DNA from: Selaginella moellendorffii
Taxonomy: Eukaryota > Plantae > Lycopodiophyta
Direction of reading: 5' to 3'
NCBI RefSeq assembly: GCF_000143415.4
Contig: NW_003314342.1
Location: forward strand, 519,569 to 583,568
Length of the DNA: 64,000 nucleotides
The translations under genes were made by a program, and so were the position numbers. How positions within the stretch are numbered: position 1 is the first letter of the stretch; each line of letters starts with the position of its first letter. This document shows, piece by piece, positions 2,676 to 49,388 of this stretch. The notes below the pieces were generated by a model. The model did not search any database, was not told the DNA's origin, and worked only from the letters and a program-made list of their open reading frames with translations.

Positions 2676-4379
2676 TGTAAGTGACTAAATTTTCCATTCT
2701 ACTTTAGTCATTTAACCACACTTCCGACCACTTGGAGGAGTCTCAATCATAAGTTCAATTCAAGACTTGGGACTTGCTAGCCCCGAGAATGGCATCCATG
2801 CCCCTCAACATTTGCACTTGGTCCAAGTGCTCCACGTGTCCGATCCCACGACCGACACTCAAAGGTACCACCGACATAGCAGCCTGTTACGCTAAGGCCA
2901 TGCCCAATCACCTTTGCCACACTGGTAGTCCAATACCACTTGCATCACAGTCTTGGCTCTCCAAGACTAGGTAAACCATCCGTGAGTGGTCATCTCAGAT
3001 CCACTCTTTAGCATCCTTAGGATGCCCACCGACAAAGGGAATAGCCTTCCCCAATATCCCTCTGTCAGTCCCCACTAAGTCCCTTTCTGCCCCTGGCCGT
3101 GTTTGCCGACACTGCCACTGGATCGAGGCCCACAGGCCCGACCACTAAGTCCCACGGTCCTCTGGGACTTCCTCACCACAGGACTGTGTCCTTGGTCACT
3201 ACCCCAGAGGACTGCTCCTCTTCCTTTCCACAGTCTAGGCCTTTGGGACAACATTTTGGAACACCGTGGCCTTATGCGAGCCACCTGGGTACTCTCCCCG
3301 CCTTCCGCCCTTGGGTGCTCTAGCCATGGGCTTAGAGCGAGGTTCCATTGAGCCACGACAAGTATCCAAGTAGGTAGTGCCACCCACACTTGGACTGGGA
3401 GCATCGGCCAGTCGATCTCCCGGGGGAACTAGAGCCGGCTCTTGAACACTTCACCAAGCTACCCCGCTTGTCGATCCGTGTTCACTCTAGTCTTGGACTT
3501 CCCAGTGGGCAGCTCATCACCCAACACTGGGTCCGGCCTTCCTGGGCCAAACTGGCCTTTCGTGGCCAAACTGGCTCCACTGCAGTCCTCCCCCTACTAT
3601 ACTTTTGGAGCTCACCAAACCCCCCAGGGTCTGGGAGACGAACGCTTTGGGCTTTCACCCTCTCAGACTCGAACTCGGACTCGGACTCGGACTCGGACTT
3701 GGACTCGGACTCAGACTCGGGCTCGGGCTCGGTCCCGGCCTCGGCCTCGGTCTTAGTCTCAATCCCGATCTCGGTCTCGGTCTCGGTCCCGGTCTTGGTC
3801 CCGGTCTCGGTCTCGACTTCGGACTCCATCTCGGGTCCATCTCGGACTCCATCTCGGACTCCATCTCGGGTCCATCTCGGACTCCATCTCGGGTCCATCT
3901 CGGACTCCATCTCGGACTCCATCTCGGGTCCATCTCGGGTCCATCTTGGGTCCATCTCGGACTCCATCTCGGGTCCATCTTGGACTCCATCTCGGGTCCA
4001 TCTCGGACTCCATCTCGGTCCATCTCAGACTCCATCTCGGACTCCATATCGGACTCCACGTCGGGTCCATCTCGGACTCCACTTCGGGTCCATCTCGGAC
4101 TCCATCTCGGACTCCACTTCGGGTCCATCTCGGACTCTATCTTGGACACTTCCACGTGTCATGTGTTGGTCCTTTTTGGGTCCCTTTTTGGAGCCTTGCT
4201 CATTGCTCGCTTCGTGCTCGCTCCTTGAGCACTTTGTTGGGAGTTCCACTCCCGATCTCGACCTTTCAAGTTGGAGCTTTTAGTCCAAACGTGTTACGCT
4301 CGTTTGGCTTTCGCTTCGGCCACTACCACGTGGCACCCTTCCGGCTCCACTTTGGGGCCTAAGGATTTTGTGTCTCACA
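2676..4379 (-). mobile_element. Solo LTR (1704 bp) inserted in the chromodomain, related to the LTR at 4867-6396 but in opposite orientation
   Basis: TG...CA termini; 5-bp TSD CGGGG at 2671-2675 and 4380-4384; removing it restores EATWEPGENLASAQDLVEEF. Its left end is the reverse complement of 6355-6396. Confidence 0.92.
3661..4145. repeat. Minisatellite inside solo LTR: CTCGGA hexamers then mixed CCATCTCGGACT / CCATCTCGGGT units
   Basis: Directly visible tandem units; they account for the overlapping low-complexity ORFs here. Confidence 0.95.
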
Positions 4380-4866: not shown

Positions 4867-6396
4867 TGTAAGGAACCAACTCCCCAATGTGTCGTAGGCT
4901 AAAGGATCCCTGAAAGCATGACCCAAATGACAAAGAGTTCATCAGATGGGACCAAGTCTGAGATCAAGTCCAAGACCAACTCTGAGACCGAGTTCGAGAT
5001 AGAGTCCGGGATCGAGTCCGAGGCCGACTTGGAGACCGAGTTCGAGACAGAGTCTGAGATTCGAGATCGGGTCCGAGACCAAGTCTAAGGTCAAGTCCGG
5101 AGTCGAGTCCGAGATCGAGTCCAAGATCGAGTCCGAGACCAAGTCCGAAGTTGGGTCCGAGATCAAGTCTGAGATCAAGTCCGAGACCGAGTCCAAGTAC
5201 TAATATAGGTCAAAGGGTGAAAGCCAAAAGCGTGTGTTTGCTGGGGGGGGGGGGGGGGGCTGCAAGGGGTTCCAAAAGTATAGTAGGGATAAAGAGGTCC
5301 ATGAACCAGTCTTGAAAGAACTCTCCGGTGGTGCTTCCAAACTGGCTTGAGGTTGAGATTGGGGCTGAGGGCCTTGGGTGGGAGTCGGCATGGACTCGGG
5401 TGGTGCTGAAGGGGCCACCCAAGGAAGTGCTCAAGAGCAGCTCCCACTCCCGAAAGGGAAATCGACTACGGTGCTTCCGGCTCATGTGGAGTGGTGCCCC
5501 ACTTAAGTACCTTATGGTTCATTGGTCCCCGCCCTTCCTAGGGGCTTAGGCCTCCCTTTCGGGGTGGAAGTGGGGGGGTAGAGGTATCCATACCGGGCTG
5601 TTAGGCCATGGTGTTTCACCCCGGTGTCCCGAACCAAGTGTTGCACCCAATGCTTGGGATTTAGAGGGTTCCATGATCAAGTCTTGTTGTACTAAGGGAT
5701 GTTAGGAACCTGGAAGCCTGGTGTGCTTGGCTTTTTGTGTCTGCGGGGAGTGTAGCCGAACCTTGAGTCCAGTCTAACCCGGGGAGGGGGATTATGAGAG
5801 ATTTGGGAATCCATGGATGGATGGCTAACGCTCCGTTGTTCGTGCAATGAGTAGCTGAAACCAATTAGAACCAAGTAGGAGTTGGTACAATAGGCGGGAA
5901 CCTTAGTGAGGGAACTTAGCAAAAATCCAAGGCAGTGTTGGTAGGATAGATGAGGTAAGCTAGCAAATTGGAAAGGAAAAATTTGTGACTTATAGTAGAG
6001 ACTAAATAACGGATATTGAAAAATTGTGTTTCCCATATTTTGGGGCATTCTAAGGATGTTGAGATGAGGTTATCGGATAACCACTTATAGATGGATGGCT
6101 CAATCTCAAAAAGATAGAACTGTGTTACAAATGGTCTTGGATTATCAATGAATCAAGGGTAAATAGATATAACCTTAGTGTAACAGGTTAAGATGTCAAT
6201 AGTTCCTTTGGATGTTAAAAGTGAAATTGGACATATGGAGCACTTATACTAAATGTGAAGCTAATGTGGTCTTGAGATCACATATAGGGAAAAGCAAGTA
6301 GAATAAAGACCTTTAGAGTTTATGAGTAAAATTCCTCCAAATGGTCATGGGTATGGTTAAGTGAGTAAAATAGAATGAAAAATTTAATCACTTATA
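4867..6396 (+). mobile_element. 3' LTR of the chromovirus (~1.5 kb, decayed)
   Basis: Starts TGTAAGG right after the PPT-like tract and ends CACTTATA (decayed CACTTACA). Shares blocks with the solo LTR and has a GAGTCCGAGATC-type array at ~4950-5195. Confidence 0.8.
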
Positions 6397-6800
6397 AGTT
6401 ATATGTTTAGGAATTTGACCTTATACCTTCATTCAGTGCCCAAAGCCTTGAACCTCGGGATCCACTCTATTGCCCTTGATGCATATGTCTAAAGGTTTGG
6501 TTCCACTCTGTGGTTATTCTATGGCAAATCACCATAGGGTATAGTGAAAACCATGTACATTACACTCATAACTTTTTCTTAGATTACACTGAAAGCAATG
6601 CAAATGTAAATTTAAGATTTAGTGAAGTTAAGTCCAAGAAAAGAGTTATTAGAGATGAAGGATCAAACACATAAATCATCTTTTCTCCTCTAAGAAACAC
6701 ATAACTTATCTTCTTTCTTACAGAAAATGATTTCTAATGAGGTGTGATTGTACATCATGCAATCAAAAGTCCTTATTTCAATGCATATAGGTTATGGCAA

Positions 6801-9800
6801 TTTTACAAGTGGTATGTTCTAAGGTGGATAACTTAAAACTCTTAACTAATTAAAAAAAAAGTGCATTCTTATTCTCCTTTTATATTTCCTTAGCATATAT
6901 GTTCATAGGTTAAGTTCTACTACATGGTTATGCTATAGTAAAGTATTATAAGATATTTAGTGTCATAATAGTTTGATTTTCATCTTCTCTCATCTCAAGT
7001 TTCTTTTGAAATAATCTTGTTCTATTTTTTTCATTTTATCTTGCTTAGTATGTATCATAACATAATTCTAAATGCTCCTTAGTGGCACAAAGATAACTTA
7101 ACCTATCTTTAAATTATATATTGACTATAGGAAATAGAAATACTATATTCAGAAATAGGATTCTTGATATCTAAAATAAATATCTTATATATATAATAAT
7201 TAAATAAATTTTTATTTTTATTTTGAAACAGAAATATATATATTATATATTAGATAAAATAAATAAAATATATTAATAAATAATTGATATTATATAAAAG
7301 TTGAATACAAATACATACATATAAAGCTTATAGAAAGGATAAAAGTATTTAAGTCGCCAAACTTAAAGTCCTTAAGAAACTGGAGCAAAATATTATTAAT
7401 TTATTTTATGCTTGAAGACTATTTATGGTATTTTTATTTTAAAGAAAAATTTAAAGTAAGAATTTCCAATATGACTTTAATCTCTTTATTAAATAATATT
7501 CAAAAAGACATTTTATATACTGGTAATATATACTTTTAAAATTTTATTATTGACACAATATATAAATTGAAATATAGTTTCATTAACTACTGCCTAGATA
7601 GAAAAAAGAGAACTCAAGAATTATGTTGTGGGTCTTTTTTATTATTCTTTTGAATATCAATTACACTTGTCAAAGATCTATATCATCAAATGATAAAAAT
7701 AATTTATATAATCTCAAAAATCAGACTACAGTTTATCATGATTTTAATATGAAATCATTCAATAAAACTAGAGATAATAAATTAGATGATTATGATTGGA
7801 AGCCTGATATGATTTCAGGTGTGAGAACATGTAATACATATGGAAATGCTATAGTATGGCGCTATAGCTATGATTTCAAAAGTAAAGATTTTGATCATAC
7901 ATTTTATCAAGAATGCCATTTTTATTTACATAAAACTTATTTTATTGGTGTAACATTTAATGGTGAGGGATTATTTGAAACAACAGGTTGGTATGGATGG
8001 CAAAATTGGGCTTTTACAGGACATTGGGAGAGAAGAAACACACAAACTGTGAAATTTCTTGCTGGATATTAAAATTATAACTCTAAATAAAGAATATATA
8101 ATACTTAACAATAAAAGTTCTTAAATGAATATTTGAATAATATTATAAATTATTTATGTAAAATACCATTTTTATTTTAAAATTGAATATGAATAAAAGA
8201 AAATTTAACTTTTACACTTCTACATAATTCTCTGTGGCAGCTAAAAATGTATTAAAAGACTAAAACACCCTTTTACCACTTCAAGAAGTAGAAAAAGGTA
8301 CCACTTCAGTACCTCTAATTATCTTACAACAAGGCACCTTAGGGATTACGCACCAATATGGTGATTAATATGGCTAAATTGTGTCAATAAGGGCTCTCCA
8401 CTTTCCAATTTACTTAAGTGAAGACAGATAAAGTCCATTACATATATTAAGGAGAAAAATTCAACTTATTAGTAACAAAAATGTTTCTTTCGCCAAACTC
8501 CAATTGGGCAGTGAGTGAGTTACAGCTCAAAGTTTTAGCTAGGAAAAGATATTAATAAGAAAACCTAATTATGAGCATCTACTTTGGTATATGGCATATT
8601 ACTGTTTTTTTAGTGTATATAAGACTAGTAATAAATCAGTAAACCAATCAAGCTACGGTGCTCAATAATTATTCTATTTGTATATGACTTCAATAGATAT
8701 AAACAAACACTAGTGCTAAATGCAAGGGCAGTCAAAATTGCTTCACTAATAATAGATGACTTCAAAATCCAGTAGCAAAAGATCATCAAGCCCTTGAACC
8801 CACTATCACATTCAGTGATGAAAATGTAGCTGATCTTAGTGCTTACTTGACTTTCAAGACAAATGCAAACTTGACTTAGCCATTTCCCAAGAGTTTTCCC
8901 TCAATGGTGACCATCATTCGTCACACCTCTATATCTATACGATATAACCTTTTTTGTCAACAAAACCGTGTCTTTCATACAGTGCCTTTGTCGGTCTACA
9001 ACCCAAAAGAGTAGATTAATATTATTTGATCAAATAGTAGATCAATCACTCTGAATGATTGTTTCGAGTATAACGAGTTGACTTCACTCTATGTATCGAA
9101 ATCGCTGCCTGCATATACGTTGAGGCTACCGCCATACGCCATGTAGGTGCTGAAAGCAAGACTAGGACATAAAGCATTCGAACAGACAGCCTGATTGTCG
9201 TTGAATCCTGATATCAAGATTAAAGATGGATCTTCAAATGATCCGTAGATCTTTTGCTTTAAAATTGCTCTTCTCTCTCCATCAGACTATAGCCAGGCTA
9301 TGGAGTTGCAAGAGACGCATAAAAACCATATAAAAAAGCGTACATATTGAGGCAGATGTTGCGTCCTGCGTGCATGGACAAAAGACCATAGAGAAGTACT
9401 TTTGCGTTCCAATTCAAATACTGCAAATGTTGAAATCAAAACTTGACTGGTTCCGTCTTGACAAACACTCCATTGATTCGGTGCAAGCGCGTGGACCTGA
9501 CCCAAAGGCTTGATCAACTGTGAGGATCTCACAATCACCGAGGACTTTGCGAGCAACATGGATGAACTTTTTTGTCTAATATGCCGTATGTGTAGTCGCC
9601 GTACCAGGACCAAGTTTCTTATGAAGAAACCGTAACATAGGTAATAAGGAGATTGACATAGAGCTAGAGGTTGCAAGCATCTCATTGTTGAATCAATCAG
9701 GATCAAGCAATCCAATCAATCAACATTTCAGCAGGTTGCAGCATAGCACCACCACCCAAGGCGCAACCAGTTTTGCAGAAAAAACTCTATATTCCAGCAA

Positions 9801-10640
9801 CTTACAAGCCAAAAGACAGGCATTGAATGCACAACCTCTAAAAGAAGTCCCTAGCCTTTAAATTCAATGCTCCCGGGAATATCCCCCACACGTTACGTAG
9901 GGCATATTCGTGACTTGAAGAGCCCTAAAAAATAAGTTTAAACAGAGCACGGGAAGTCGTGGGAAGCGGAAATTGATGACAAAAACTACCCATAATGCGA
10001 AGGATTGATTGATCACATCCCCTGGCTGCAGCGTTGCATTGTCGTTTCGATCGATCGATTGAATTCAATTGATTGTGAGGAGATGAAACGAAATGGAAAT
10101 GAATTTCATCCGGCTGGCGAGCGCGAGACTGGTGATCGACACGTCAGGTCGGGTGTTAGTTTTTTTCTTTTTTTCTTGTCTCGGTCTTGATTTAGATGTT
10201 CATGGAAGCATGAAGAGAATCAACTCTGTGCTTGATCAGCACGCTAATCGGCAAGAACAAGTCACAGATTCTCCAAAGTTTTCGACAATCCACGAACAAA
10301 TAAAATACGGACAAAAGAAATGTACGTGAATGTATTGTATGGTGTCAAGACTTTGCTATGTACAGCCTATGTTGTTGTAGTTCTTCTGGCAATCAATCAA
10401 CATCATCTGCGCTCTTGTTGCAAATTCGAAGTTTTCCTTCGCTTGATGCCTTGCTTGTGACTGTGAGCTGAATGATCCATTCACGAAGAAGCGAATCGAA
10501 ACGATATCAGTCTCATATCATAAGATCACATGTTGGACGGAGCAGAGAAATCACAGCCCAGAAGAACAGAGAAGAGGAGAGCTAAGAGAGCTGAGAGAAG
10601 AGATCACAATCATGATGAGAGGAATCAGAGATAAGGGAAT
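6801..10640 (+). repeat. Segmental duplication copy A (YvgO-like gene block plus CLE-downstream sequence)
   Basis: 6801-8360 matches 13602-15195 and, from ~7200, ~23370-24550. 8610-10640 closely matches ~26280-28315 (near-identical from ~8900). Confidence 0.9.
7623..8072 (+). CDS. Small secreted protein (149 aa) with YvgO-like C-terminal domain, intact copy
   Basis: Long ORF in very AT-rich DNA, hydrophobic N-terminus (MLWVFFIILLNI), AATAAA just after the stop, two paralogous copies in the window. C-terminal GEGLFETTGWYGWQNWAFTGHWERRNTQTVKF fits the G.F...G..GW.NWAF.G...R...TV.F pattern recalled for Bacillus YvgO. Confidence 0.75.
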   Translation: MLWVFFIILLNINYTCQRSISSNDKNNLYNLKNQTTVYHDFNMKSFNKTRDNKLDDYDWKPDMISGVRTCNTYGNAIVWRYSYDFKSKDFDHTFYQECHFYLHKTYFIGVTFNGEGLFETTGWYGWQNWAFTGHWERRNTQTVKFLAGY

Positions 10641-10644
10641 TTTG

Positions 10645-13597
10645 GTGCGATATTATTCCAGGAGGGTTCTTTAGAACTTACTAGTAAAGATCTTATCTCG
10701 ATCTGAGATGGTTTCTTTTGGCCTTCCCCGCACTCGAACCACTTGTTCAAAGAACAGTTTTGCCACACCTTCTGCATCTATTTCTGTTGTGGTGGGTATG
10801 AAATGTGCCATCTTCAAAACTCGGTCCACCACCACGAATATCGCATCAAACCCCTCACTTGGGGGGAGTCCCGTGATGAAGTCCATCGTAAGACATTTCC
10901 ACGGGCGATCTGGAATTGGGATGCTTTGTAACAAACCCCCACTAGCCTTAGTTACGGCTTTGACCTGGGACATGTCTTTATCTTGGATGTCCTTAGCCAT
11001 ATCTGGCCAGTGATACTTCCTTTTGAGTAAGCCTATCGTCTTAGACACTCCACCATGTCTCGCAAGAGGTCTGTCATGACACTCTTCTAAGGCTACCTTC
11101 TTTAGTTCCCCTTTTGGAACATACACCCTCGTTTGTTTATAATATATGAATTCATTTCATTTCGCATAGCATGTTTTCTCTTCTGTTGGCAACTCACCTC
11201 TCTGGTGAGCTTCTCGCGCCTCTTGGTTCCTCAACAACACTTCTTGTGCTAGACTATCGCTCTCATACGTTGTCCGCACATCGTCCCAAAAGGTTGCTGT
11301 CACGCTAAATATTGCCAACTTCAAGCTTGCTTTTTGACTTAGAGCATCTGCCACGATATTGCTCCTCCTAAGTTTATACAGAATCTCGCAATCAAACTCA
11401 ACCAAAGCGTTGGCCCACCAACCTTGTTTTCCTCTTAAGTCGGGTTGTGATAAGAAGTGTTTCATTGCCACATTATCAATGTAAACTTTGAAGTGCCTCC
11501 CAAGGTAGTGTCGCCACTCCTTGAGTGCCTTGACCACCGCAAATAATTCCTTCTCGTGGGTAGGCCACTTTCGTTAAGCCTTGTCCAACTTCTTCGAGAA
11601 GAATGCTACTGGATGGTTGTCTTGCTTCAAAACTGCACCCAACGCAAAGTCGAAAGCATCTGTTTCTACCTCAAAGTCCTTACCAAAGTTGGGTAGCGCC
11701 AACACGGGGGGTCTTCCTCAACTTCCCTTTGAGGTGGACAAATGCCGCCTCGCATTCCGTTGTCCATACCATTTTCTCTTTACCCGTTTAATTCGTTAAG
11801 AGCAAGGCTACTCTCGAATAGTGTTTGATAAACTTTCAGTAGTAGTTGTATAGCCCCAAGAACGCCTTCAACTCATGTACATTCGATGGTCACTCCCATT
11901 CCTGGATCACTTGGACCTTCTTAGGGTCCACCTTGAGCCCGTCCTTGCCCACCACATGCCCGAGAAACTTTACCTCTTGTTGAGCAACATCACATTTGCT
12001 CTCTTTAGCATATAGCTTGTGTTCCCTTAGTTTTTTAAACACCTTCGTCAAGTGTTCGGCATGCTCCTCTAGCATCTCACTATAAATCAAGATGTCATCA
12101 ATATAGATGACTACGAAGTGATCCAGATAGGGTACAAAAATATGGTTCATCAGCACCGAAAACGTTACCAGTGCATTGCACAGCCCAAAGGGCATCACCA
12201 AAAACTCGAAGCTTTCATACCTTGTTCGACAGGTTGTCTTCTCGACATCTTCCTCTGCTACCCTGATCTAGTAGTATCCTGATCTTAAGTCAATACTTGA
12301 GAAGTATTTTGCCTTTCCCAACTTATCGAACAAGTCTTCAATCTTTGGCAAAAGGTACTTGTTTTTCTTTGTATACTTGTTAAGCAACCAGTAGTCTATG
12401 CATATGCACATAGATCCATCTTTCTTTTTCACAAATAACATCGACGTTTTATACGGCAACTTGCTCAACCTAACATACCCTTTGTCTACCAATTCTTCTA
12501 GTTAGTGCTTGAGCTCTTCGAGTTCCTTTTCATTCAAACAATAAGGGGGACGAACCACCACCTTAGCACCCTCGACCAGCTCAATCTTGTGTTCTATCGG
12601 TAGTGCGGGGGGTAACCCCGCTAGTAGCTCCTTTGGCATGGTATCCTGGAATTGGTCCAACACCTACTGGATCACTAAAGGTACTTCTTCCGTTCCTGTC
12701 TTTTTGTCACTCTTCATCAAGAGTAAGCATAAAAATGTTGCCTTGATTCCTTTAGTGAGTTGTCCTCTCATGGACACCAGGTTTAAGCAGGAGTCTTTAA
12801 CCTTACATTGCCCTACTTTTAAATCCTAGGCCTCCACCCTAGATCGTTCTCCCCAGGCATTCACCAGTACCACAAAGGTCCTCCCTTGTCCATGTAGGGC
12901 TACTATGAACCACTTCGACTCTCACTTGTCGAAGTATCTCATCGGTGCTTTGGCTATTTTGAACAAACTCTATCGTCCTTGGTTCACCTAGCTGTTGCAC
13001 CGTTAGTCTGGCTTGCCGGACTATGTCTGCAACCACAAAATTATCCGAAGCACCCGTGTCAATAAGGATCTTAACAAAGTTACCTCTGAGCTTCCCTCGG
13101 AGGGTTAGTTGATGTTGCGAACGACTCTCTACCAAAGTTGCTAGTATAATGAGTAACTTTGAGCTAGGGACTGGATCACATACCTTAATTTGGACTTCAC
13201 CTGACTTAATGACCATATTGGCTCTAGCCTTCTTCGGGTAGGAACATTCTCTCGAAAAATGTCCTGCTTCACCGCAATTGTAGCATACGTTGTTTCCCAC
13301 GCTACTAGCAAACTTGACCTTCTTATCCATGGGTTTGTCTCTTTTTGCTTAACTCCCCCATGTACTTGCTCGCTGGCCATTGGATTTGCCTTTTTTGGAA
13401 CACAGAGGATTCATTCTTAAAGAAACTCTTCTTGAATTTCCCTTTGCTATATGTTCCCCTTGGTTTGGCCCTTTTGCTAAACATGGACCCTGACCCCGTC
13501 GTGTTCCCTTTTCGCAGGTTATCATTGACATGCACTTTGATAGTTGCATCTAACGCTTCATTGTAGTTGGTCGGGTTCCAACACATCATCTGGTTAT
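10645..13597 (-). mobile_element. Truncated Ty3/gypsy gag-pol, same family as 1-4866, no LTRs
   Basis: Zinc knuckle CYNCGEAGHFSREC, protease LIDTGAS, RT YIDDIL, RNase H, integrase N-terminal half; high similarity to 1-1560; multiple stops. Confidence 0.93.
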
Positions 13598-14175
13598 AGT
13601 GATTTTACAAGTGGTATGTTCTAAGGTGGATAACCCAAAACTCTTAACTGATTAAAAAAAAATGCATTCTTATTCATAGATAATTCCCTTAGCATATGTG
13701 TTCATGGGTTAAGTTCCACTCCATGGTTATGCTATGGTAAAGTATTATAAGATATTTGGTGTCATAATAGTTTGATTTACATCTTCTCTCATCTCAAATT
13801 TCTATTGAATTAATCTTGTTCTATTTTTCATTTTATCTTGCTTAATATGTATCATAATATAATTCTAGATGCTCTTTAGTGGCACAAAGATAACTTAACC
13901 TATTTTTAAATTATATATTGACTATAGGAAATAGAAATACTATATTCAGAAATAGGATTCTTGATATCTAAAATAAATAAATAAATATATATATATATAA
14001 AATTTAAATAAAATTTTGTTTTTATTTTAAAATAAAAATATTTAATAGATATTAGATAAAATAAGAAAAAAAATATATTAATAACTGATTCATATTATAT
14101 AAAAAGTGAAGATAATATAAGAGGAACAAATACATACATATAAAGCTTATAGAAAGGATAAAAGTATTAAGACAC

Positions 14176-14209
14176 TGTGAGTGCATGGAATATGGAACAG
14201 GCCCTCACA
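14176..14209. mobile_element. 34-bp TG...CA LTR remnant with ACAC TSD
   Basis: Absent from copies A and C; TGTGAG/CTCACA terminal inverted repeat; ACAC at 14172-14175 and 14210-14213; ends GGCCCTCACA like the LTR ending at 23336. Confidence 0.7.
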
Positions 14210-14478
14210 ACACCAAACTTAAAGTCCTTAAGAAACTGGAGTAAAACATTATTAATTTGTTTTATGCTTGAAGACTATTTATGGCATTTTTATTTTAAAG
14301 GAAAATTCAAAGTAAGAATTTCCAGTATGACTTTAAACTCTTTATTAATTAATATTCAGAAAGACATTTTATATAATGGTAACTTAGAATTTTAAAATTT
14401 TATTATTTACACAATATATAAATTGAAATATAGTTTTATTAACTACTACCTAGATAGAAAACAGAGAACTCAAGAATT

Positions 14479-14919
14479 ATGTTGTGGGTTTTTCTTATTA
14501 TTCTTTTGAATTAATTATACCTGTCAAATATCTCTATCATCAAATTAGAAAAATAATTTATATAATCTCCAAAATCAGACTACAGTTTATCATGATTTTA
14601 ATATGAAATCAGTCAATAAAACTAGAGATAATAAATTAGATGATTATGATTGGAAGCCTGATATGATTTCAAGTGTGAGAACATGTAATACATATGGAAA
14701 TGCTATAGTATGGTGTTATAGCTATGATTTCAAAAGGAAATATTTTGATCATACATTTTATCAAGAATGCCATTTTTATTTACACAAAACTTATTTTATT
14801 GGTGTAACATTTAATGGCGAGGGATTACAACAGGTTGGTATGGATGGCAAAATTGGGCTTTTACAGGAAATTGGGAGAGAAGAAACACACAAACTGTGAA
14901 ATTTCTTGCTGGATATTAA
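14479..14919 (+). pseudogene. YvgO-like paralog, pseudogene
   Basis: Collinear with 7623-8072; premature TAG at codon 24 and a 7-bp deletion (TTTGAAA) near 14827. Confidence 0.85.
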
Positions 14920-15438
14920 AGAACATTTAACTCTAAATAAAGAATATTTAATACTTAACAATAAAAGTTCTTAATATTATAAATTATTTATGTAAAATAC
15001 CATTTTTATTTAAAATTGAATATGAATAAAAGAAAATTTAGCTTTTACACATTACTATTTCTACATAATTTTCTGTGGCAGCTAAAAATGTATTAAAAGA
15101 CCAAAACAGCCTTTTACCACTTTAAGGAGAAGCACTAGAAAAAAGTACCACTTCAATACCTTTAATTATCTTACAACAAGGCACCTTGGGGATTACAAAT
15201 TTTCATATTACGCCTAAAAAGGTGTATCACTAATGTAAGTCTCTACTTTACTTAGAAGCATTAGTAGAGTGACCAAATGCCATCATCCCCAAGGGGGTAA
15301 ACCCACCCTCAGCTCAAGCTTCCTTCCTATGTTTGTTCCTGTAGTATGTACCTCTTTCTCTCCATGTATATATAGTACATATCACTCTTCAAATTTTTAC
15401 CAGTGTCATCTCTCCTAGTAATCAAATAATATTATACT

Positions 15439-15473
<35 letters not shown>

Positions 15474-16692
15474 ATACATATGAAGGAAAATTATTTTTTA
15501 GAAATGTTTTTAATCTAATAATATATATTAGTGTGACAATTAGAGCTTAAGTTTGCCTTTATTTTTTATGATTTAGCTATTATCAATGTATTTCTTATGT
15601 TACTTAATCGATAAAAAATATCATTACTTTTTCTTAAGGATTTTTGTTATGGTACCATAAAAGTTCATATGGTGATTAATATGGCTAATTGTATTAATAA
15701 GGGCTCTTCACTTTCCAATTTTACATATATTATGGAGAAAACTTCAACTTATTAGTAACAAAAATGTTTCTTTTGCCAAACTTCAATTGGGCAGTGAAAC
15801 AGCCTAGAGTGAGTTACAGCTCAAAGTTTTAGCTAGGAAAAGATATTAATAAGAAAACCTAATTATGAGCTAGCAAGCCATGACATCTTATATGGCATAT
15901 TACTATGTCCTAATATCAATCGCATCCTTGCATCTTGTGATGGCACTCCAATGGTAAGTTCCTTTGTCTTGGTGATGCTTTTTGCATAGAAACATTAGCT
16001 TGAGAGATTTGTCCAAACTCATGACATCAATTTTAAATTTAATTTTTGTGTGGCCAACACCTTGATAACATGGATGCTTGGAAGTATAGGGTATAAAAAG
16101 GCTCCATGCCAACAATTTGAGAACAGAAATTTCTCTAAATACTTCTCTTTTTTCTCTCCTCTTGGCATTGCTATGGATTCACTGCTTCGAGCAACAGCAA
16201 TCTAGTGATTTCTTTTATAGTGTAAAGTTTAGCCAGATATACTACTCATTATTTTTACTAGTCTTGAACTACAACTTTGCATCTTTTTATTCTTCATTAG
16301 TTCAGCAAGCCTGTCCTAAGTTTTCTGGCCCTTTCTTGTGTTAAAGGCTTTTCAGGCAGCAACTTTGGAGAGCTTATGAACTAGCTTGATTTAATCAGAC
16401 AAGCTGGCCATGCTATGAGCAATAATCTGTCTATGGTCAGGTTTTGTGAAATAGAGATATTGAATGCTTTGTGTTGGCAATTAGTACAATAAGTTCTTGA
16501 ACTAGACTACAAATATTAGTTACCCTTAAACTTCCTTTTGATAAAGACTACATAGCAGTTTATTAATAAGGAGCATCTTACAAAATTGTTAATATTATTA
16601 TTGTAAAACTGTTTTTCTAGTGTATATAAGACTAGTAATAAATCAGTAAATCAATCAAGCTATGGTGCTCAATAATTATTCTATTTGTATAT

Positions 16693-23369: not shown

Positions 23370-26300
23370 ATATATTCTGAAATATTATTTTAAATAAGAA
23401 AATATTAAATTTTTTATTAGGAAAATTTAAAATAAATAAAATATATTAATAAGTAATTTATATTATATAAAAATAGAGGATAATATAAGAGGTAAAAATA
23501 CATGCATATAAAGCTCATAGGAAGGATAAAAGTATTTAAGTCACCAAGCTTAAAGTCCTTAAGAAACTGGAGAAAACATTATTAATTTTTTTTATCTTCT
23601 ATCCTTGAAGACTATTTATTGTATTTTTATTTTTAAAAAAAGAATTTCCAGTATGACTTTGAACTTTTTATCAATTAATATTCAGAAAGAAAATGTATAT
23701 ACTGGTAAATTAGACCTTTGAAATTTTATTATTTACACAATATATAAATTGAAATATAGTTTTATTAACTACTACCTAGATAGAGAAAAAGAGAACTCAA
23801 GAATGATGTTGTGGGTCTTTTTTATTATTCTTTTAAATATTCATTATACTTGTCAAATATCTCTATCATCAAATGAGAAAAATAATTTATATAATCTCAA
23901 AAATAAGACTACAGTTTATCATGATTTTAATATGAAAAAATTCAATAAAACTAGTGATAATAAGTTAGATGATTATGATTGGAAGCCTGATATGATTTCA
24001 AGAGTGAGAACAGTAATACATATGGAAATGCTATAGTATGGCGTTCTATACATCATTTCAAAAGTAAATATTTTGATCATACATTTTATCAAGAATGCCA
24101 TTTTTATTTACATCAAACTTATTTTATTGGTGTAACATTTAATGGCAAGGGATTATTTGAAACAACAGGTTGGTATGGATGGCAAAATTGGGCTTTTACA
24201 GGACATTGGGAGAGAATAAATACAGAAACTGTAATATTTCTTACTGGATATTAAAAGAACATTAACACTAAAAAAATAAGAAATATTATAACTTAGAAAT
24301 AAAAGCTCTTTTATGCATATTTGATTTAATAATATTAAAAATTATTTATGTTAAATACCTTTTTATTTAAAAATTTAATATGAATAAAAGAAAATTTAAC
24401 TTTTACACTCGTTACTCTTTCTACATAATTTTCTGTGGCATCTAAATATTAAAAGACTGAAACACCCTTTTACCACTTTAAGGAGAAGCACTAGAAAAAG
24501 TAACACTTCAATACCCCTAATTATGTTACAACAAAGGCACCCTTAGGGATTAGAGATTTTGATACTACGCCTTGTATCACTAATGTAAGTACTTAGAAGC
24601 ATTGGTAAACTCACCCTCAAGTCAAGCTTCCTTTCTGCATTTGTTCCTGTAGTGTGTACCTCTCTCTCTCTCTATGTATATATAGTACATAACTCTTCAA
24701 ATTTTTACATGTCATCTCTCCTAGTAATCAAATAATATTAAACTTATATATATATATATATATATCCTTTTTATATAATAAGAGCTTAAGTTTGCCAGTA
24801 TTTTTTGATGAATTAGAAATTACCAATGTGATATTCTTATTTCTTATGTTACTTAATAAATGCAAAATATCTTTTACTTTTTTTTTAATTATTTTGTTTA
24901 TGGTACCTGATATAATGATTTTGAGATAGTTCATATGGTGATTAATATTTCTAAATTGTGTTACTAAGGGCTCTCCACCTTTCCAATTTAAGTGAAGATA
25001 GATAAAGTGCATTCCATATATTAAGGACATATTTTTCAATATATTTTGTAAATTTGAGCTGTAACTCACTCTAGGTTGTTTTACTGCCCAATTGGAGTTT
25101 GGCAAAAGAAACATTGTTGTTAATAATAAGTTGAAGTTTTCTTAGCTAGGAAAAGATATTAATAAGAAAACCTAATTATGAGCTAGCAAGCCAAGACATA
25201 TACTTTGGTATATGGCATATTACTATGTCCTTAATCTATTTCTGTGGGCATCCTTGCATCTTGTGATGGCACTCCAATGGTAAGTTGGTAATGCTTTTTG
25301 CATAGAAAAACATTAGCTTGAGAGATTTAAAGACTGGGACATGACATCAATTTTATTTGATTTTTGTGTGGCCAACACCCTGATAACATGGTTGCTTGGA
25401 AGTATAGCATAAGAAGACTCCATGCCAACAATTTGAGAACAGAAATTTCTCTAGATTAAATGCTACTTCTCTTTTTTCTCTCCTCTTGGCATTGCTATGG
25501 ATTAGCTGCTTCGAGCAACAGCAATCTAGTGATTTTTTTATAGAGTAAGGTTTAACCAGATATACTAAGAATATTCTCAAACTTGGCATTGGATAAATTT
25601 TAGACATGAATACTCTAGAAAAAATTATTAGAAATTAATGTGGTATATTAAAGTTCTGAGAGACTGTATATTGATTAAAATAGTTTTTAGTTTCTGTTAA
25701 GAAAATCAGGTGGGCTTTAAGAATATTTCTTATTTTGTGCTTTCCTATTTTATTATTGTTCTACTAATGATAGGATTTATTTTACTAACCATAATTTTTA
25801 AAAATCTTAACTACCATATATATCTTACCCTGGGAATTAAAATATAAAGATAACAAAACATCTTACGACCAAGTGCGGTTTTCATTATTTTTACTAGTCT
25901 TGCAAACTTTGCATCTTTCATTAGGTCAGCAAGCCTGTCCTAAGTTTTCTGGCCCTTTCTTGTGTTAAAGGCTTTTTAGGCAGCAACTTTGGAGAGCTTA
26001 TGAACTAGCTTTTAATCAGACAAGCTGGCCAAGCTGGCCAAGCCATGGGCAATACTCTGTCTATCGTCAGGCTTTGTGAAATACAGATATTGAATGCTTT
26101 ATGTTGGTATAGTATGCCTTGGCTTTGCAATTAATACAATAAGTTCTTGAACTAGACTACAAATATTAGTCATCCTTAAACTTCCTTTTGATGTAGACTA
26201 CATAGTCCTACTTAGCAGTTGAGATCACAAATAAGGAGCATCTTACAAAATTGTTAATATTATTATTGTAAAACTGTTTTTCTAGTGTAATATAAGATAA

Positions 26301-28315
26301 TTAGTAGATCAGTAAACCAATCAAGCTACTGTGCTCAATAATTATTCTATTTGTATATGACTTTAATAGATAAACAAACAAATGAAAGGGCAGTCAAAAT
26401 TGCTTCTATAATAAAACTGATAATACATGACTTCAAAATCCTAGTAGCAAAGAAGCCCTTGAACCCACCATTGATGAAAATGTAGCTGATCTTAGTGCTT
26501 ACTTGACTTTCAAGACAGATGCAAACTTGACTTAGCCATCGAGAGTTTTCCCTCAATGGTGACCATCATTCGTCACACCTCTATATCTATACGATACAAC
26601 CTTTTTGTCAACAAAACCGTGTCTTTTATACAGTGCCTTTGTCGGTCTACAACCAAAAGAGTAGATTAATATTATTTGATCAAATAGTAGAAGCAGTAGA
26701 TCAATCACTCTGAATGATTGTTTCGTGTATAACGAGTTGACTTCACTCTATGTATCGAAATCGCTGCCTGCATGTATACGTTGAGGTTACCGCCATACGC
26801 CATGTAGGTGCTGAAAGCAAGACTAGGACATAAAGCATTCGAACAGACAGCCTGATTGTCGTTGAATCCTGATATCAAGATTAAAGATGGATCTTCAAAT
26901 GATCCGTAGATCTTTTGCTTTTAAATTGCTCTTCTCTCCCCATCAGACTATAGCTAGGCTAAGGAGTTGCAAGAGACGCATAAAAACCATATAAAAAAGC
27001 ATACATATTGAGGCAGATGTTGCGTCCTGCGTGCATGGACAAAAGACCATAGAGAAGGGCGTACTTTTGCGTTCCAATTCAAATACTGCAAATGTTGAAA
27101 TCAAAATTTGACTGGTTCCGTCTTGACGAACACTCCATTGATTCGGTGCAAGCGCGTGGACCTGACCCAAAGGCTTGATCGACTGTGAGGATCTCACAAT
27201 CACCGATGACTTTGCGAGCAACATGGATGAACTTTTTTGTCTAATATGCCGTATGTGTAGTCGCCGTACCGGGACCAAGTTTCTTATGAAGAAACCGTAA
27301 CATAGGTAATAAGGAGATTGACATAGAGCTAGAGGTTGCAGGCAGCTCATTGTTGAATCAATCAGGATCAAGCAATCCAATCAATCAACATTTCAGCAGG
27401 TTGCAGCATAGCACCACCACCCAAGGCGCAACCAGTTTTGCAGAAAAAACTCTATATTCCAGCAACTTACAAGCCAAAAGACAGGCATTGAATGCACAAC
27501 CTCTAAAAGAAGTCCCTAGCCTTTAAATTCAATGCTCCCGGGAATATCCCCCACACGTTACGTAGGGCATATTCGTGACTTGAAGAGCCCTAAAAAATAA
27601 GTTTAAACAGAGCACGGGAAGTCGCGGGAAGCGGAAATTGATGACAAAAACCACCCATAACGCGAAGGATTGATTGATCACATCCCCTGGCTGCAGCGTT
27701 GCATTGTCGTTTCGATCGATCGATTGAATTCAATTGATTGTGAGGAGATGAAACGAAATGGAAATGAATTTCATCCGGCTGGCGAGCGCGAGACTGGCGA
27801 TCGACACGTCGGGTCGGGTGTTAGTTTTTTTCTTTCTTTCTTGTCTCGGTCTTGATTAAGATGTTCATGGAAGCATGAAGAGAATCAACTCTGTGCTTGA
27901 TCAGCACGCTAATCGGCAAGAACAAGTCACAGATTCTCCAAAGTTTTCGACAATCCGCGAACAAATAAAATACGGACAAAAGAAATGTACGTGAATGTAT
28001 TGTATGGTGTCAAGACTTTGCTATGTACAGCCTACGTTGTTGTAGTTCTTCTGGCAATCAATCAACATCATCTACGCTCTTGTCGCAAATTCGAAGTTTT
28101 CCTTCGCTTGATGCCTTGCTTGCGACTGTGAGCTGAGTGATCCATCCACGGAGAAGCGAATCGAAACGATATCAGTCTCATATCATAAGATCGCGTGCTG
28201 GACGGAGAGGAGAAATCACAGCCCAGAAGAACAGAGGAGAGGAGAGCTGAGAGAGCTGGGAGAAGAGATCACGATCATGATGAGAGGAATCAGAGATAAG
28301 GGATGGAAATTTTTT
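23370..28315 (+). repeat. Segmental duplication copy C, contiguous with the CLE locus
   Basis: Contains the blocks found in both copy A and copy B. Confidence 0.88.
23803..24254 (+). pseudogene. YvgO-like paralog with a single 1-bp frameshift
   Basis: Collinear with 7623-8072; ACA-GT at ~24011 versus ACATGT in copy A; the rest reads through to ...NWAFTGHWERINTETVIFLTGY*. Confidence 0.8.
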
Positions 28316-33923: not shown

Positions 33924-34463
33924 ATGGAACCCTCCCACATTGTCTTCTTTCTTTCCTTCTTCTTCGCGGGATCACTCCTGGCAGTGGAAATCACTGCTCG
34001 CGAGGAATCTCTCGTTCACTTGCCGGATAACTTCAACAGGGATCGAACGATCGAGTTCTACCAGCACATCATCCGCGCAAATGGATCAACCTCCACTCTC
34101 AGCGAGACTCCCATCGGTGGCGGCACTCCGGGACGATTTGGCTACGCGGTCGTGTTTGATCACAAGTTGACGCAAGGGAGTGACTACTTCTCCAAGGAAG
34201 TTGGGAGGGTCCGTGGAGCCGCCGTGGTTTCTTCGCTGGATGGATCCCAAGCTCACGAAACTTTCACGGTGAGCTTGGCCGGGAGGAATGGTGCTTTGAG
34301 CTGCGCTGGAAGTTTTGAGCTTCGTCAACCCGTGACGAGAGTTCCAATTGTGGGTGGAACTGGAGAGTTTTACCGTATGGAGGGAGTTTATACGTCTCAA
34401 GTTGTTCATACCAGCGGAGCCAATGTTATTGCTCGTGTCCAGCTGACAATCCGTCGCGACTAA
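33924..34463 (+). CDS. DIR: Dirigent-like protein
   Basis: Signal peptide; FYQH, FG..VVFDHKLTQG, GRVRG, PIVGGTGEF motifs; TATATAAA at ~33853. Confidence 0.92.
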   Translation: MEPSHIVFFLSFFFAGSLLAVEITAREESLVHLPDNFNRDRTIEFYQHIIRANGSTSTLSETPIGGGTPGRFGYAVVFDHKLTQGSDYFSKEVGRVRGAAVVSSLDGSQAHETFTVSLAGRNGALSCAGSFELRQPVTRVPIVGGTGEFYRMEGVYTSQVVHTSGANVIARVQLTIRRD

Positions 34464-35650: not shown

Positions 35651-38600
35651 TTAAATATTTTTTATTATGATATATAATTTGTTATGATCTGTCCAATATG
35701 CAGGTGCTATTCCTGCTTTTGTATATATTATATCTTTTATCCATATATGATCTATTAATTTATTATTACGTGTATTGTGTTTTATTATTTGTATATATCC
35801 TTCTTTCTCCATTATTGTTTGAAGTGGTTTTACTTCTTCTATTTGGTAGTCAATATTAAAATCTCCTGTAATTATTACTGGTTTTTTATTATCTATTTTC
35901 TGTATATATTTTTGTAGTTGTTTTATGAATATATGTATATTTGTTCCAGGTTTTCTATGTAAATTTATTATCTGTAATTGTTTTTTATTTTTTTCTAGTG
36001 ATACATATGACATTGCCATTGTTTCTGTTTTTAAATGTTCTACTATTTCTGATTTGTAGTCATTTGTATGCAATATTGCTATATGTGGGGGTTGTTCATG
36101 TATATATGATTTATATTTATTAAAATATAAATCCTCATGTTTTTGTGTTCTTACTTCTTGCATACATATTATATCTGATGTTAATAATTGTGAATCACTC
36201 TTTATATCTTCGTGATGTGCAGTAATAGATCTTGTATTTAGAACTTGTATAATTGTTTGGTTAGCTGTTTTTTCTTCTTGTAAATCTATTAGATCAATTT
36301 GCCATGGTGCTTCTGTTGTCATTCTTATTATTTCTTTAGCTGCATCTTTATTGATTTTAATATGTTTATGTTCAATTGGTCTATATAAATGTATCCCTTT
36401 TAATGTTTGTGCTCTTGATAATGCAATATATGCTTGTCCTGGATATTTTGTTTTATATGGGTCATATCCTAATTGCATAACTGTTGATCCTTGTGCTCTA
36501 TGTATTGTTCTTCCTGCGCACGGTTGTACTGGAAATTGGGTTCTACTTATAACATAGTTTTTATTTTTAGTAATATTTATTGTTCTTGTTATTTTTTTTA
36601 TTGGTGTCCAGTTTTTTTCATTATTTTGCTTTATTGTTATGTTTTCTTTAGCTCTTGTTTTTTCACCTGTTTTTATATTTGGGTATTCTATCCACATTAT
36701 TTGTTCTTCTTCAATCTGGGTTACATCTTGTAATACTCCATCTGCTCCATTTACTAATCCATCTTCTGTTGCTATATTTTGTGTTATTTCAATTGCCATT
36801 TTCTTTTTCAAATGTAATATTTTATGTAGTCCTTGTGTTTTTCTTGTGTCATCTGGCAGCGAAAAATGTGTAGGACAGGAATTTCCATGTTTGTCTTGTG
36901 CTTCTATAATTATATCTTTACCTTGTATGTGTTGTATTATTTTTTCATTATGTTCTCTTACTTGTTCATTAGTTGCAAATATAGAATAGTATTCTGTGTT
37001 ATATGTATCTGTAATGACTTGTTTATTTATATATTCTAGCTCTTTATCTGTTTGTTCTCCTATTTTTATTTTATTTAAAGCTTTTATAAAGATTATATCA
37101 TCTTTTTGCCTCATTATTTCAGTAAGTTCATAGATTTTAAAATTATTTTTCCATGGGTGGTGTATGGAGACATCATTTTCAGGTCTATATGTTTTTGTTG
37201 AATAAATTGGTGTTTCAAATGTAGGATTTAATTGATAGAAATCACCTGTAAATATACAATCCATCCCACCAAAGTCTATTCCATATGTTGTTTTGAAGCT
37301 TTCACATCTTCTATTTATATCTTGTAGCATTTCTATACTTACCATTGATATTTCATCTATTACTAAACATTTTATTGTTGAAAACTTTCTTTTATATTTA
37401 TCTAATGTGTCATTTGTTAATATTGTTTGACATTGTTTTGATGCTTCTGGTCGAAATGCAAAAGCTGAATGTATTGTTGAACCATTTATATTACAAGATG
37501 CTTTTCCTGTAGGTGCTGTTATTAATATTGTTTGTCCTGGTTCATTATTTATATCTTGGTTTGTTTTATAATATCGTTTGAGTGTTTCTATAAGTGTATT
37601 TAAAAGCATTGATTTTCCAATTCCTGCTCCTCCTGTTAAAAATAAGCACAATTGTTTGTTAGGTTGTTTTATTTTTTTCAATATGAAGTCATCATGTATT
37701 ATTCTTTGCTTTTTATTAAGNNNNNNNNNNNNNNNNNNNNNNNNNNNNNNNNNNNNNNNNNNNNNNNNNNNNNNNNNNNNNNNNNNNNNNNNNNNNNNNN
37801 NNNNNNNNNNNNNNNNNNNNNNNNNNNNNNNNNNNNNNNNNNNNNNNNNNNNNNNNNNNNNNNNNNNNNNNNNNNNNNNNNNNNNNNNNNNNNNNNNNNN
37901 NNNNNNNNNNNNNNNNNNNNNNNNNNNNNNNNNNNNNNNNNNNNNNNNNNNNNNNNNNNNNNNNNNNNNNNNNNNNNNNNNNNNNNNNNNNNNNNNNNNN
38001 NNNNNNNNNNNNNNNNNNNNNNNNNNNNNNNNNNNNNNNNNNNNNNNNNNNNNNNNNNNNNNNNNNNNNNNNNNNNNNNNNNNNNNNNNNNNNNNNNNNN
38101 NNNNNNNNNNNNNNNNNNNNNNNNNNNNNNNNNNNNNNNNNNNNNNNNNNNNNNNNNNNNNNNNNNNNNNNNNNNNNNNNNNNNNNNNNNNNNNNNNNNN
38201 NNNNNNNNNNNNNNNNNNNNNNNNNNNNNNNNNNNNNNNNNNNNNNNNNNNNNNNNNNNNNNNNNNNNNNNNNNNNNNNNNNNNNNNNNNTCATTTATTT
38301 GTTCCATATTTGCTTCATATGCATTCATGTATGTTGTGTACATTTCTTTAAGATCTTCTTCTTTTCTAAATTTTTTATGTAAGATTAATCTTTCAAATGC
38401 CCACTTTTCTGAATCTTTTTCTTTACTAAAGTTTATATATCTAATTATATTGTTTTTTTTATGTTTTCGTGTTGTTACTTCTTTTTCAAATATATATTCA
38501 GTTGTTATCTCTACTAATGTTAAATCTTCTAATTTTTCTGGTCTTTGCATGTATTTTTCAATTAGTCCAGGTACTGTTATGTCTGTTTCGTCTTCTTGCA

Positions 38601-48151: not shown

Positions 48152-49388
48152 CATATATTTTATAAGCTTCTACAAATTTTTGCCAGACCACCTGAGAAGT
48201 ATACCTTCCCTAAATTTTTTGCCAGGTCACCTGGGAAGTGTTCCCCCAAAAAATACCATCACAAATTGCTTGCCATAGGTTATAAAACTTAAAATGATAT
48301 AATGTATCATATAAGATTATTAAATAAATAACTATAAAAACCATAAATAAGAAACTTTAATAGTCTAATATTTTAAGCTTTGTTTTAGCAGATTTTGTAA
48401 CAAGCATAAATGTATATAAACTTCCATAAACTTAAATCAAATTGATAATTTTGAAACAAACAAGACACATTTGAATCAGAAACTCCATGAGAAATACAAG
48501 GAGATTTTGATGAGAGCATTGCCTTCCCCAATAGCTACACAATGGACAATTCTAGTGGCATCAACTGGCTCAGTTCTCTTCAGCTGCTTTGAATGCTAAT
48601 CGATATGTTATCACAAGTTAACTGTGTTTTAGGCTATTACCCAGTTTTACTGCCGGCAGGGGTTCTTCTTGAGCAGAAGATAAAGATCATGCTGGCGAGA
48701 TTTAGATATTCCAACTTTCTGGATGATGCCTGGAGTAGAATTTACGCATGGAAAAAGAGAAAAAGAACAAATGGAATGTGCGGCATGGTTGGAGTCTTTC
48801 GCATTTCATGAAAACGACATCCCGCAAACCTTGACACACATTTTTAAGAGCGTCTCCCACTACCAAAGTGGAGAAGGGAATTTTTCCTAGACACCTCTAA
48901 ACCATGCAGCACAAGAAGAGCCAAGAGAATCCACGTCTGTATAAACTCGTATTCATTCTATTCTTTTGGCGTTTTAGATCTTGTTTTCAAGTTTAGAACG
49001 ACCACCTTTCCGGTGCCTCAATTCCATGATCTTTCATTGTTCTATTCTTTTTGTGCGTGTGTTGTAAAGCTGCAAGGAAAAGTCGATGCAAGGACGAAGT
49101 GATTTCTCTCTAGCTTTGTTTCTTGCTTTTGTTCTTGAAGGGACCGCTTTGCCTAGCTAGGATCTCTAATGGAACCAAGAACAAAAAGAAATGTGAGAGA
49201 AAGAGAGAAGGAAATAAAAAAGTTTAGCATATAGTAATAGACCTATGGCGAAAGCACCATCAAATCTTGCGTGATTTTAATCGACCGATAAATATTTCTA
49301 CCCCCAAAACAGTGAAACACTTGTGCCTTCCAAGCCACTCGCGGAAAAAGAAACAAGCAAAAAGGGAGAAAACAGAGGAATTTCGAGA

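Follow-up and report, generated by a model that had tools for sequence, protein, structure and literature searches.

Results

An intact open reading frame and its two disrupted relatives

The window analysed here is a 64,000-nucleotide stretch of the Selaginella moellendorffii genome (GL377646.1, positions 519569-583568, assembly GCA_000143415.2), which is part of a scaffold of 890 kb. Two intronless genes of the window, encoding an 899-aa PPR protein and a 179-aa dirigent protein, match this scaffold without a single mismatch, and the coordinates follow from their offsets. Its subject is copy A, an intact open reading frame (ORF) that appears to encode a distant plant relative of the bacterial stress response protein YvgO. 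Two disrupted relatives, copies B and C, lie downstream in the same window, and each of the three is carried by an AT-rich duplicated unit. The features are listed below in window positions.

7623..8072, plus strand: copy A, YvgO-like coding sequence (CDS), ATG to TAA, 149 codons plus TAA, intact and intronless (GL377646.1:527191-527640)
7559..7566, plus strand: candidate TATA box TATATAAA, 57-64 nt 5' of the ATG, inside a block identical in all three copies
7623..7670, plus strand: predicted signal peptide, about residues 1-16, judged from hydrophobicity, core LWVFFIILL
7671..7790, plus strand: Asn/Asp/Lys-rich low-complexity linker, residues 17-56
7791..8069, plus strand: predicted YvgO-like (DUF7888-related) alpha+beta domain, residues 57-149, one helix then eight strands, C-terminal motif GWYGWQNWAFTGHW
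6790..8603, no strand assigned: AT-rich duplicated unit of copy A, bearing the intact gene, bounded by contig ends and loose ends at 6790 and 8601
13592..15904, no strand assigned: AT-rich duplicated unit of copy B, from self-alignment
23385..25224, no strand assigned: AT-rich duplicated unit of copy C, its 5' end cut by a long terminal repeat (LTR) retrotransposon
14479..14919, plus strand: copy B, pseudogene
23806..24254, plus strand: copy C, pseudogene, frameshifted by a 1-bp deletion at about codon 70

The intronless, very AT-rich ORF of 149 amino acids (aa) that the original prediction had placed at 7623-8072 was present exactly as first described. When the AT-rich island (6790-8603) was shuffled 2,000 times, the longest ORF beginning with ATG averaged 49 aa and reached 127 aa at most. 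Copy A is thus longer than the longest ORF of all 2,000 shuffles, so it is not a chance product of composition, and the ORF is real. The exact copy A product was absent from a collection of about 15 billion protein sequences, and the gene therefore appears to be unannotated. The TATA box upstream is a candidate only, since such matches are common in DNA of 21 % GC.

The three parts of the protein that had been predicted, a hydrophobic N-terminus, an Asn-rich linker and a Trp/Gly-rich C-terminal domain, were all recovered by residue composition and hydrophobicity. Residues 1-10 are strongly hydrophobic (Kyte-Doolittle 3.0-3.3) and signal-type N-termini were also found in the fern, lycophyte and bacterial homologues; the copy A protein is probably secreted. 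The linker holds 8 Asn, 5 Asp and 5 Lys among its 40 residues, with N-x-S/T sequons at N33 and N47, and it could not be aligned among family members; residues 9-57 were modelled with a predicted local distance difference test score (pLDDT) below 50. The domain of 93 residues is rich in Trp (6), Gly (9), Tyr (9) and Phe (9).

Distant homology to YvgO

The bacterial proteins were reached through a back-translated WINWAFRGW pattern, a YvgO motif taken from the original prediction. This motif does exist: the pattern search returned 56 loci in Bacillus, Streptomyces, Amycolatopsis, Crossiella and Shimazuella, whose ORFs of 150-180 aa begin with a signal peptide and are named 'stress response protein YvgO' or 'stress protein' and assigned to PF25411 (DUF7888). 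Profile-profile alignment with hhalign matched eight plant proteins to 12 YvgO sequences with a probability of 95.9 % (E 5.8e-9, 83 columns), and to 45 YvgO sequences made non-redundant at 80 % identity with 96.6 % (E 5e-10, 86 columns). The alignment covered residues 57-149 of copy A, from the N-terminal helix through the last strand. A hidden Markov model (HMM) built from YvgO sequences alone scored all eight plant proteins at 17-32 bits, copy A at 23 bits, while 1,608 shuffled or reversed controls reached at most 9 bits. Among the 1,197 six-frame ORFs of the window this model picked out only copies A, B and C (E 3e-6 to 5e-5), the next one having an E-value of 1.2. By BLASTP, copy A was 35 % identical to Bacillus atrophaeus YvgO over 75 aa (E 7e-6). 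Nine residues (N75, F112, G122, G125, N128, W129, G133, V143 and F145) were invariant across the plant and bacterial alignment rows, and copy A keeps all of them. Taken with the predicted fold described below, these alignments and specific HMM matches support the proposed relatedness to YvgO and argue that the copy A protein is a genuine, distant homologue.

We call copy A a divergent relative and not a member by the Pfam rule, because it falls below the gathering threshold of PF25411 (27 bits). Scans with Pfam and NCBIfam assigned no family to the copy A ORF or to the eight plant members; against PF25411, copy A had no match at E<=10 and the eight members had none at E<=1. The PF25411 model used was version.1, a narrow one by which B. 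atrophaeus YvgO itself scored only 12.5 bits; the precomputed PF25411.3 covers YvgO. A search with a mixed profile of plant and YvgO sequences was saturated by bacterial YvgO and recovered no intermediates and no fungal members, its top match being an actinobacterial YvgO with two domains. A 301-aa protein with two tandem YvgO/DUF7888 domains, on a metagenome contig in an actinobacterial context, shows such a duplicated architecture inside the bacterial family.

Predicted fold

An AlphaFold model made from an alignment of plant sequences alone gave the domain a pLDDT of 70-89. In the ESM Atlas, the shape closest to this model was that of an actinobacterial 'putative stress protein' cluster, 92 % of which is DUF7888 (TM 0.54, 103 aa, 3.2 Å). 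A model of the domain from a deeper alignment was predicted with higher confidence (pLDDT 86, pTM 0.78), and its best match was a Bacillota cluster named 'Stress response protein YvgO' (TM 0.73, 87 aa, 2.2 Å), the alignment in this case having included YvgO. ESM Atlas feature searches gave no usable match for the whole protein and only uninformative, low-recognition matches for the domain. Among solved structures in the PDB, searches by sequence, by Foldseek and by a wide VIA-align run matched no fold; the best Z scores, 4.0-4.2, belonged to monooxygenase effector proteins and lie below a meaningful level.

Relatives in ferns and lycophytes

Exhaustive phmmer search of 1.84e9 representative proteins with copy A returned only two matches, XP_024534696 of S. 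moellendorffii (E 7e-14, 35 % identity) and KAH7404834 of the fern Ceratopteris richardii (E 1.5e-6), and a plant profile added two Adiantum proteins and one protein on a short JGI contig. A word-indexed search with the single copy A protein returned nothing, and a locus search with the plant profile found no relative in bacterial and archaeal genomes or in JGI metagenomes. The original prediction had noted that such a family was not known from seed plants, and indeed neither the phmmer nor the profile searches found a seed-plant relative. Bryophyte and algal relatives were likewise not found, all of this in searches of annotated proteins, among which copy A itself is missing, and of JGI metagenomes.

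The annotated S. moellendorffii gene for XP_024534696 is flanked by an LRR/beta-CASP gene, a bVLRF1 gene and DNA polymerase alpha, and excision of its 43-bp intron reproduced the protein exactly. In Ceratopteris the gene spans 1.9 kb, from which we take it to contain introns. The annotated S. moellendorffii gene is present in two haplotype copies at syntenic loci (GL377588.1 and GL377623.1), which differ at seven CDS positions, six non-synonymous and one synonymous. All six non-synonymous differences fall in the mature domain, and identity in the neighbouring genes is 98.7-99.1 %, a hint of relaxed or diversifying selection, although the numbers are too small to test. One of the Adiantum proteins, GOP47_0001366, carries the UniRef name 'S-protein homolog', which suggests plant self-incompatibility protein S1 (PF05938); the eight plant members had no match to that family or to any other Pfam family at E<=1, and the name looks unfounded.

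A maximum-likelihood tree of the domain was built from 7 plant and 45 bacterial rows; it is unrooted and has no fungal sequences. The plant proteins formed one clade (100/100) on the longest branch of the tree and were not nested in Bacillota or Actinomycetota. Inside it, ferns were separated from lycophytes (98/98) and copy A joined the annotated S. moellendorffii gene. Because the plant clade is not nested among bacteria and introns occur in both Selaginella and Ceratopteris, the family would have been in plants at least since about the divergence of ferns and lycophytes, or would have been acquired very long ago in each lineage. On this phylogenetic evidence the family is old in plants. The original prediction of a horizontally acquired gene, in the sense of a recent event, did not hold: the closest relatives are plant genes of S. 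moellendorffii, Ceratopteris and Adiantum in a clade outside the bacterial groups, and in S. moellendorffii the paralogue is interrupted by a spliceosomal intron and resembles host genes in GC content.

Birth and death in the three-copy array

Self-alignment of the window matched 6790-8349 with 13592-15196 (87 %), 7218-8348 with 23385-24552 (85 %), and 8356-8603 with 15667-15904. The units share their downstream sequence in the same order and LTR retrotransposons have since inserted between them, giving the picture of a local segmental or tandem duplication. Scans of the window by tblastn and HMM found copies B and C besides copy A and no others. Copy B has a 2-bp deletion at codon 11, in the signal-peptide region, after which the conserved ATG frame stops (after 11 codons), as well as a TAG where codon 24 would be and a loss of 7 bp around codons 117-119, inside the C-terminal domain. 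Copy C is broken by the single-base deletion listed above. The family had been described as amplifying, and the three copies in the window agree with that; with copies B and C broken, the array shows birth and death, two of its three copies being pseudogenes.

Counts of non-synonymous to synonymous changes on each branch were 5:4 for copy A, 6:3 plus a stop for copy B, and 16:4 for copy C, against a neutral expectation of about 4.6:1. By these counts copy A looks more constrained than copy C, though nine changes prove nothing.

A 2-kb element (8601-10638 and 26273-28303, also 16608-16692) follows all three units and has no Pfam match. Its two long copies are 94.5 % identical and thus closer than the gene-bearing parts (85 %), a contrast that points to gene conversion, to a more recent insertion, or to quicker decay of the AT-rich part.

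Composition and genomic setting

The CDS of copy A has a GC content of 28 % (GC1/GC2 32-34 %, and 19 % at third codon positions, GC3), and the upstream flank has 21 %. The AT-rich island at copy A stands at 21 % GC against 45-60 % in the flanking genic DNA. Neighbouring host genes (the dirigent gene, the LysM kinase and the two PPR genes below) have a GC3 of 52-75 %, so copy A is compositionally unlike its neighbours, as had been claimed. The ORFs of a Helitron-type element in the same window are equally AT-rich (GC3 12-14 %), and AT-richness is therefore no evidence of foreign origin; the S. moellendorffii genome holds AT-rich compartments with ORFs. The other features of the window are as follows.

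3640-4190: internally repetitive stretch of about 60 % GC, in which long ORFs (297 aa) of the two strands overlap; no Pfam family
6268-6803: very high-copy repeat, adjoining the 5' boundary (6790) of the copy A unit
10.6-13.3 kb and 18-23 kb: Ty3-type LTR retrotransposon genes
33924-34463: dirigent-like gene, intronless, 179 aa
35651-41369, minus strand: Helitron-type element, long open frames with PIF1-like helicase, endonuclease/exonuclease/phosphatase domain, Helitron_like_N and DUF6570
49323-50180: LysM-domain receptor-kinase exon
51-56 kb: two PPR genes, one encoding an intronless 899-aa protein
57 kb: nodulin-like transporter

The Helitron-type element has a GC content of 25-27 % and contains an assembly gap (N-run) at 37721-38290. 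Dirigent-like and LysM receptor-kinase genes occur within 42 kb of the array, a defence-type richness of the neighbourhood that may or may not be meaningful. Contigs of public sequencing runs from two studies carry the copy A stretch, one run being identical over 7424-7933. Other runs contain variants at 92-95 %, which must be paralogues or alleles, and a run labelled as a second organism carries 7933-8112 at about 98 %. Word depth in these contigs rises to about 25,000 over the repeat at 6268-6803 in one run, versus about 140-200 over the YvgO-like unit. Because plant genes, retrotransposons and contigs from more than one study share this context, contamination or misassembly is no serious option, and copy A is in the nuclear genome of S. 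moellendorffii.

Discussion

Based on the intact frame, the remote homology and the plant relatives, we consider it probable that copy A is an unannotated member of a very divergent fern-and-lycophyte branch of the YvgO/DUF7888 family, located in a three-copy array of S. moellendorffii, and that its most likely role is that of an apoplastic antifungal or defence protein.

The most serious competitor is that copy A is a relic that has not yet been broken, the AT-rich intronless subfamily being decaying, untranscribed DNA and only the paralogue of normal GC content with an intron (the XP_024534696 type) being functional. Two of the three local copies are pseudogenes, the runs carrying this stretch are all DNA-type or untyped contig sets, no gene call yields the copy A product, and the composition of copy A resembles that of the surrounding AT-rich transposon DNA. 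The flanks are also nearly as conserved as the coding region (91-92 % upstream versus 93-96 % in the CDS). Yet all of the family-invariant residues have been kept despite a divergence of 65 % from the GC-normal paralogue, and this demands long purifying selection in the copy A lineage. The ratio of non-synonymous to synonymous changes is lower on its branch than on the pseudogene branches, and the GC content of its CDS, first and second codon positions included, stays above that of the upstream flank. We regard a relic as doubtful, while giving it more weight than any of the other alternatives. Recent horizontal transfer from a bacterium, or an assembly contaminated with bacterial DNA, would agree with a family best known from Bacillus and Streptomyces and with an intronless gene unlike host genes in composition. 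Against this, identity to any YvgO is 15-25 % over the domain, the nearest relatives are plant proteins that are monophyletic on a very long branch, and 28 % GC matches the coding DNA of neither Bacillus nor Streptomyces. Moreover, plant LTR retrotransposons alternate with the three diverged copies, the 890-kb scaffold carries plant genes, the predicted signal peptide is of eukaryotic type, and no bacterial neighbours are present. Recent transfer and contamination are rejected on genomic context and phylogeny, and we give them next to no credence.

Could the gene instead be the cargo of an AT-rich mobile element, or be encoded by one, its copy number having arisen by transposition? The units are sharply bounded, the homology of A and B begins at the same point (6790/13592), and the Helitron-type element at 35.6-41.4 kb has a similar codon composition. 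But the unit had no similarity to that element even at word size 7, and terminal inverted repeats, target-site duplications and hairpin ends were looked for at the unit and none was found. Contig depth over the unit was about 100-fold below that of the adjacent high-copy repeat, and the shared downstream order is what would be expected of a segmental or tandem duplication later split by retrotransposons; a mobile origin is thus improbable in our judgement. Slightly less credible still is that the resemblance to YvgO is convergence or chance in a short Trp/Gly-rich motif and that the plant family is an unrelated orphan. YvgO was, it is true, picked for comparison through a motif given beforehand, phmmer with a single sequence reached no YvgO among the 1.84e9 proteins, and there was no match to DUF7888 in Pfam. 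The 83-86 columns of the profile-profile alignment nevertheless extended through the entire domain and beyond the motif, taking in the 'NVMV / GNAIVW' strand as well as the N-terminal helix, the architecture of signal peptide, linker and one C-terminal domain is the same, and the controls stayed at 9 bits or less versus 17-32 bits for the plant proteins. The shape search of the ESM Atlas was unbiased by any such choice, and with the plant-only model its top match was a DUF7888 cluster.

Several points weigh against reading copy A as a working member of the YvgO family. The gene is unannotated and falls below the Pfam threshold, two of the three local copies are dead, and the public runs that carry it are all DNA-type or untyped. 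The nine substitutions on its branch are too few to prove constraint, and by our own estimate a neutral copy of its age would still be open roughly half the time. Part of the structural agreement, the TM of 0.73 for the domain model, is built in by the presence of YvgO in the alignment, the plant-only model being the independent result, and the PDB searches gave no solved structure that could suggest a binding site. Finally, of all these proteins only a single bacterial one is known to be antifungal.

As a working member of the family, copy A may act as follows. We infer that the gene is expressed and that its 149-aa precursor would enter the secretory pathway through the hydrophobic N-terminus, the signal peptide then being removed. 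The Asn-rich linker may serve as a flexible, possibly N-glycosylated spacer, and the compact domain of about 93 aa with its conserved Trp/Gly-rich C-terminal strands would act outside the cell. There, in the apoplast, it might have an antifungal or defence role and bind a component of the fungal surface through the aromatic-rich C-terminal strands, by analogy with YvgO of B. thuringiensis. The yvgO gene of B. subtilis is a member of the SigB general-stress regulon (PMC7824861). In B. thuringiensis SF361, YvgO is secreted and acts as a proteinaceous antifungal; its mode of action is given as unknown (PMC8703302, PMC9755354). A defence role is the most likely one for the copy A protein, and it is drawn from this analogy and from the signal-type N-terminus common to all plant members.

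An ancient transfer from microbe to plant is possible. It would fit the data because no relatives were found in seed plants, bryophytes or algae and because the fold is predicted in bacteria and in Basidiomycota; the case is weakened by searches confined to annotated proteins and by a tree that is unrooted and lacks fungal sequences. A bolder scenario, which we offer tentatively and think rather unlikely as a whole, is that the ancestor of vascular plants acquired a YvgO-type antifungal gene from a soil bacterium or a fungus, or that ferns and lycophytes each acquired one. The gene would persist today in seed-free vascular plants alone, encoding apoplastic defence proteins of a class that has been overlooked, and in Selaginella it would have given rise to an AT-rich, intronless subfamily of fast turnover that annotation has missed.

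As it stands, the finding is a solid assignment by remote homology, with function by inference. To it the locus adds a three-copy array with two datable pseudogenes, a composition comparison with the Helitron-type element, and the fold match in Basidiomycota. Should the protein be produced and prove antifungal, a family of small secreted defence proteins would be common to ferns, lycophytes, Bacillus and Streptomyces and absent from seed plants. New antifungal proteins might then be sought in this family, and it would add another possible instance of ancient gene flow from microbes to plants. As this locus shows, short intronless genes in AT-rich DNA full of transposons escape the standard annotation of S. 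moellendorffii, and since the YvgO/DUF7888 fold is without a solved structure, structural work on any member that proves expressible would be worthwhile.

Comparison with known proteins

The closest known proteins are those of the S. moellendorffii genes LOC112347667 and LOC112351200 (XP_024534696 and XP_024544383, each an 'uncharacterized protein' of 111 aa), which belong to the same plant clade (98/98) and have a domain 35 % identical to that of copy A. They share with it a Cys pair and an FxGEGxFxTTGWYG block. These genes have a GC3 of 59 %, a 43-bp GT-AG intron after the signal peptide and no Asn-rich linker, whereas copy A has a GC3 of 19 % and is intronless; they are annotated and lie among housekeeping genes, whereas copy A is unannotated and lies in transposon-rich DNA. 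The fern proteins (C. richardii KP509_15G045600, Adiantum capillus-veneris GOP47_0001366 and A. nelumboides L7F22_006840) are 153-168 aa long and have the same domain and the same architecture of signal peptide and linker. They are 27-33 % identical to copy A and, unlike it, lack the lycophyte Cys pair.

The original prediction had named fungi among the sources of related proteins, and a YvgO-like fold does appear to occur there: judged from cluster summaries and on fold only, two 'hypothetical protein' clusters of about 172 aa, mostly from Basidiomycota and without Pfam annotation, are predicted to have the fold of the copy A domain (TM 0.70, 86 of 97 residues, 2.4 Å).

The bacterial YvgO proteins (PF25411, DUF7888), including those of B. 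subtilis and B. thuringiensis SF361, resemble copy A in being small (110-180 aa) and in having just one domain, of about 95 aa, at the C-terminus, preceded by a signal peptide and a variable linker. The two are colinear over the whole domain and share the Asn of strand 1 and the series G-x-x-G-W-x-N-W-A-F-x-G-x-aromatic-x-R ... V-x-F, and the same fold of one helix plus eight strands is predicted for both. At 15-25 % identity over the domain, copy A lacks the amphipathic segment (VDVLGI...) that precedes the bacterial domain and has instead the lycophyte-specific Cys pair C70/C98, a predicted eukaryotic signal peptide and an Asn-rich linker with glycosylation sequons. The bacterial YvgO gene is SigB-dependent, whereas copy A is a nuclear plant gene with intron-bearing paralogues.

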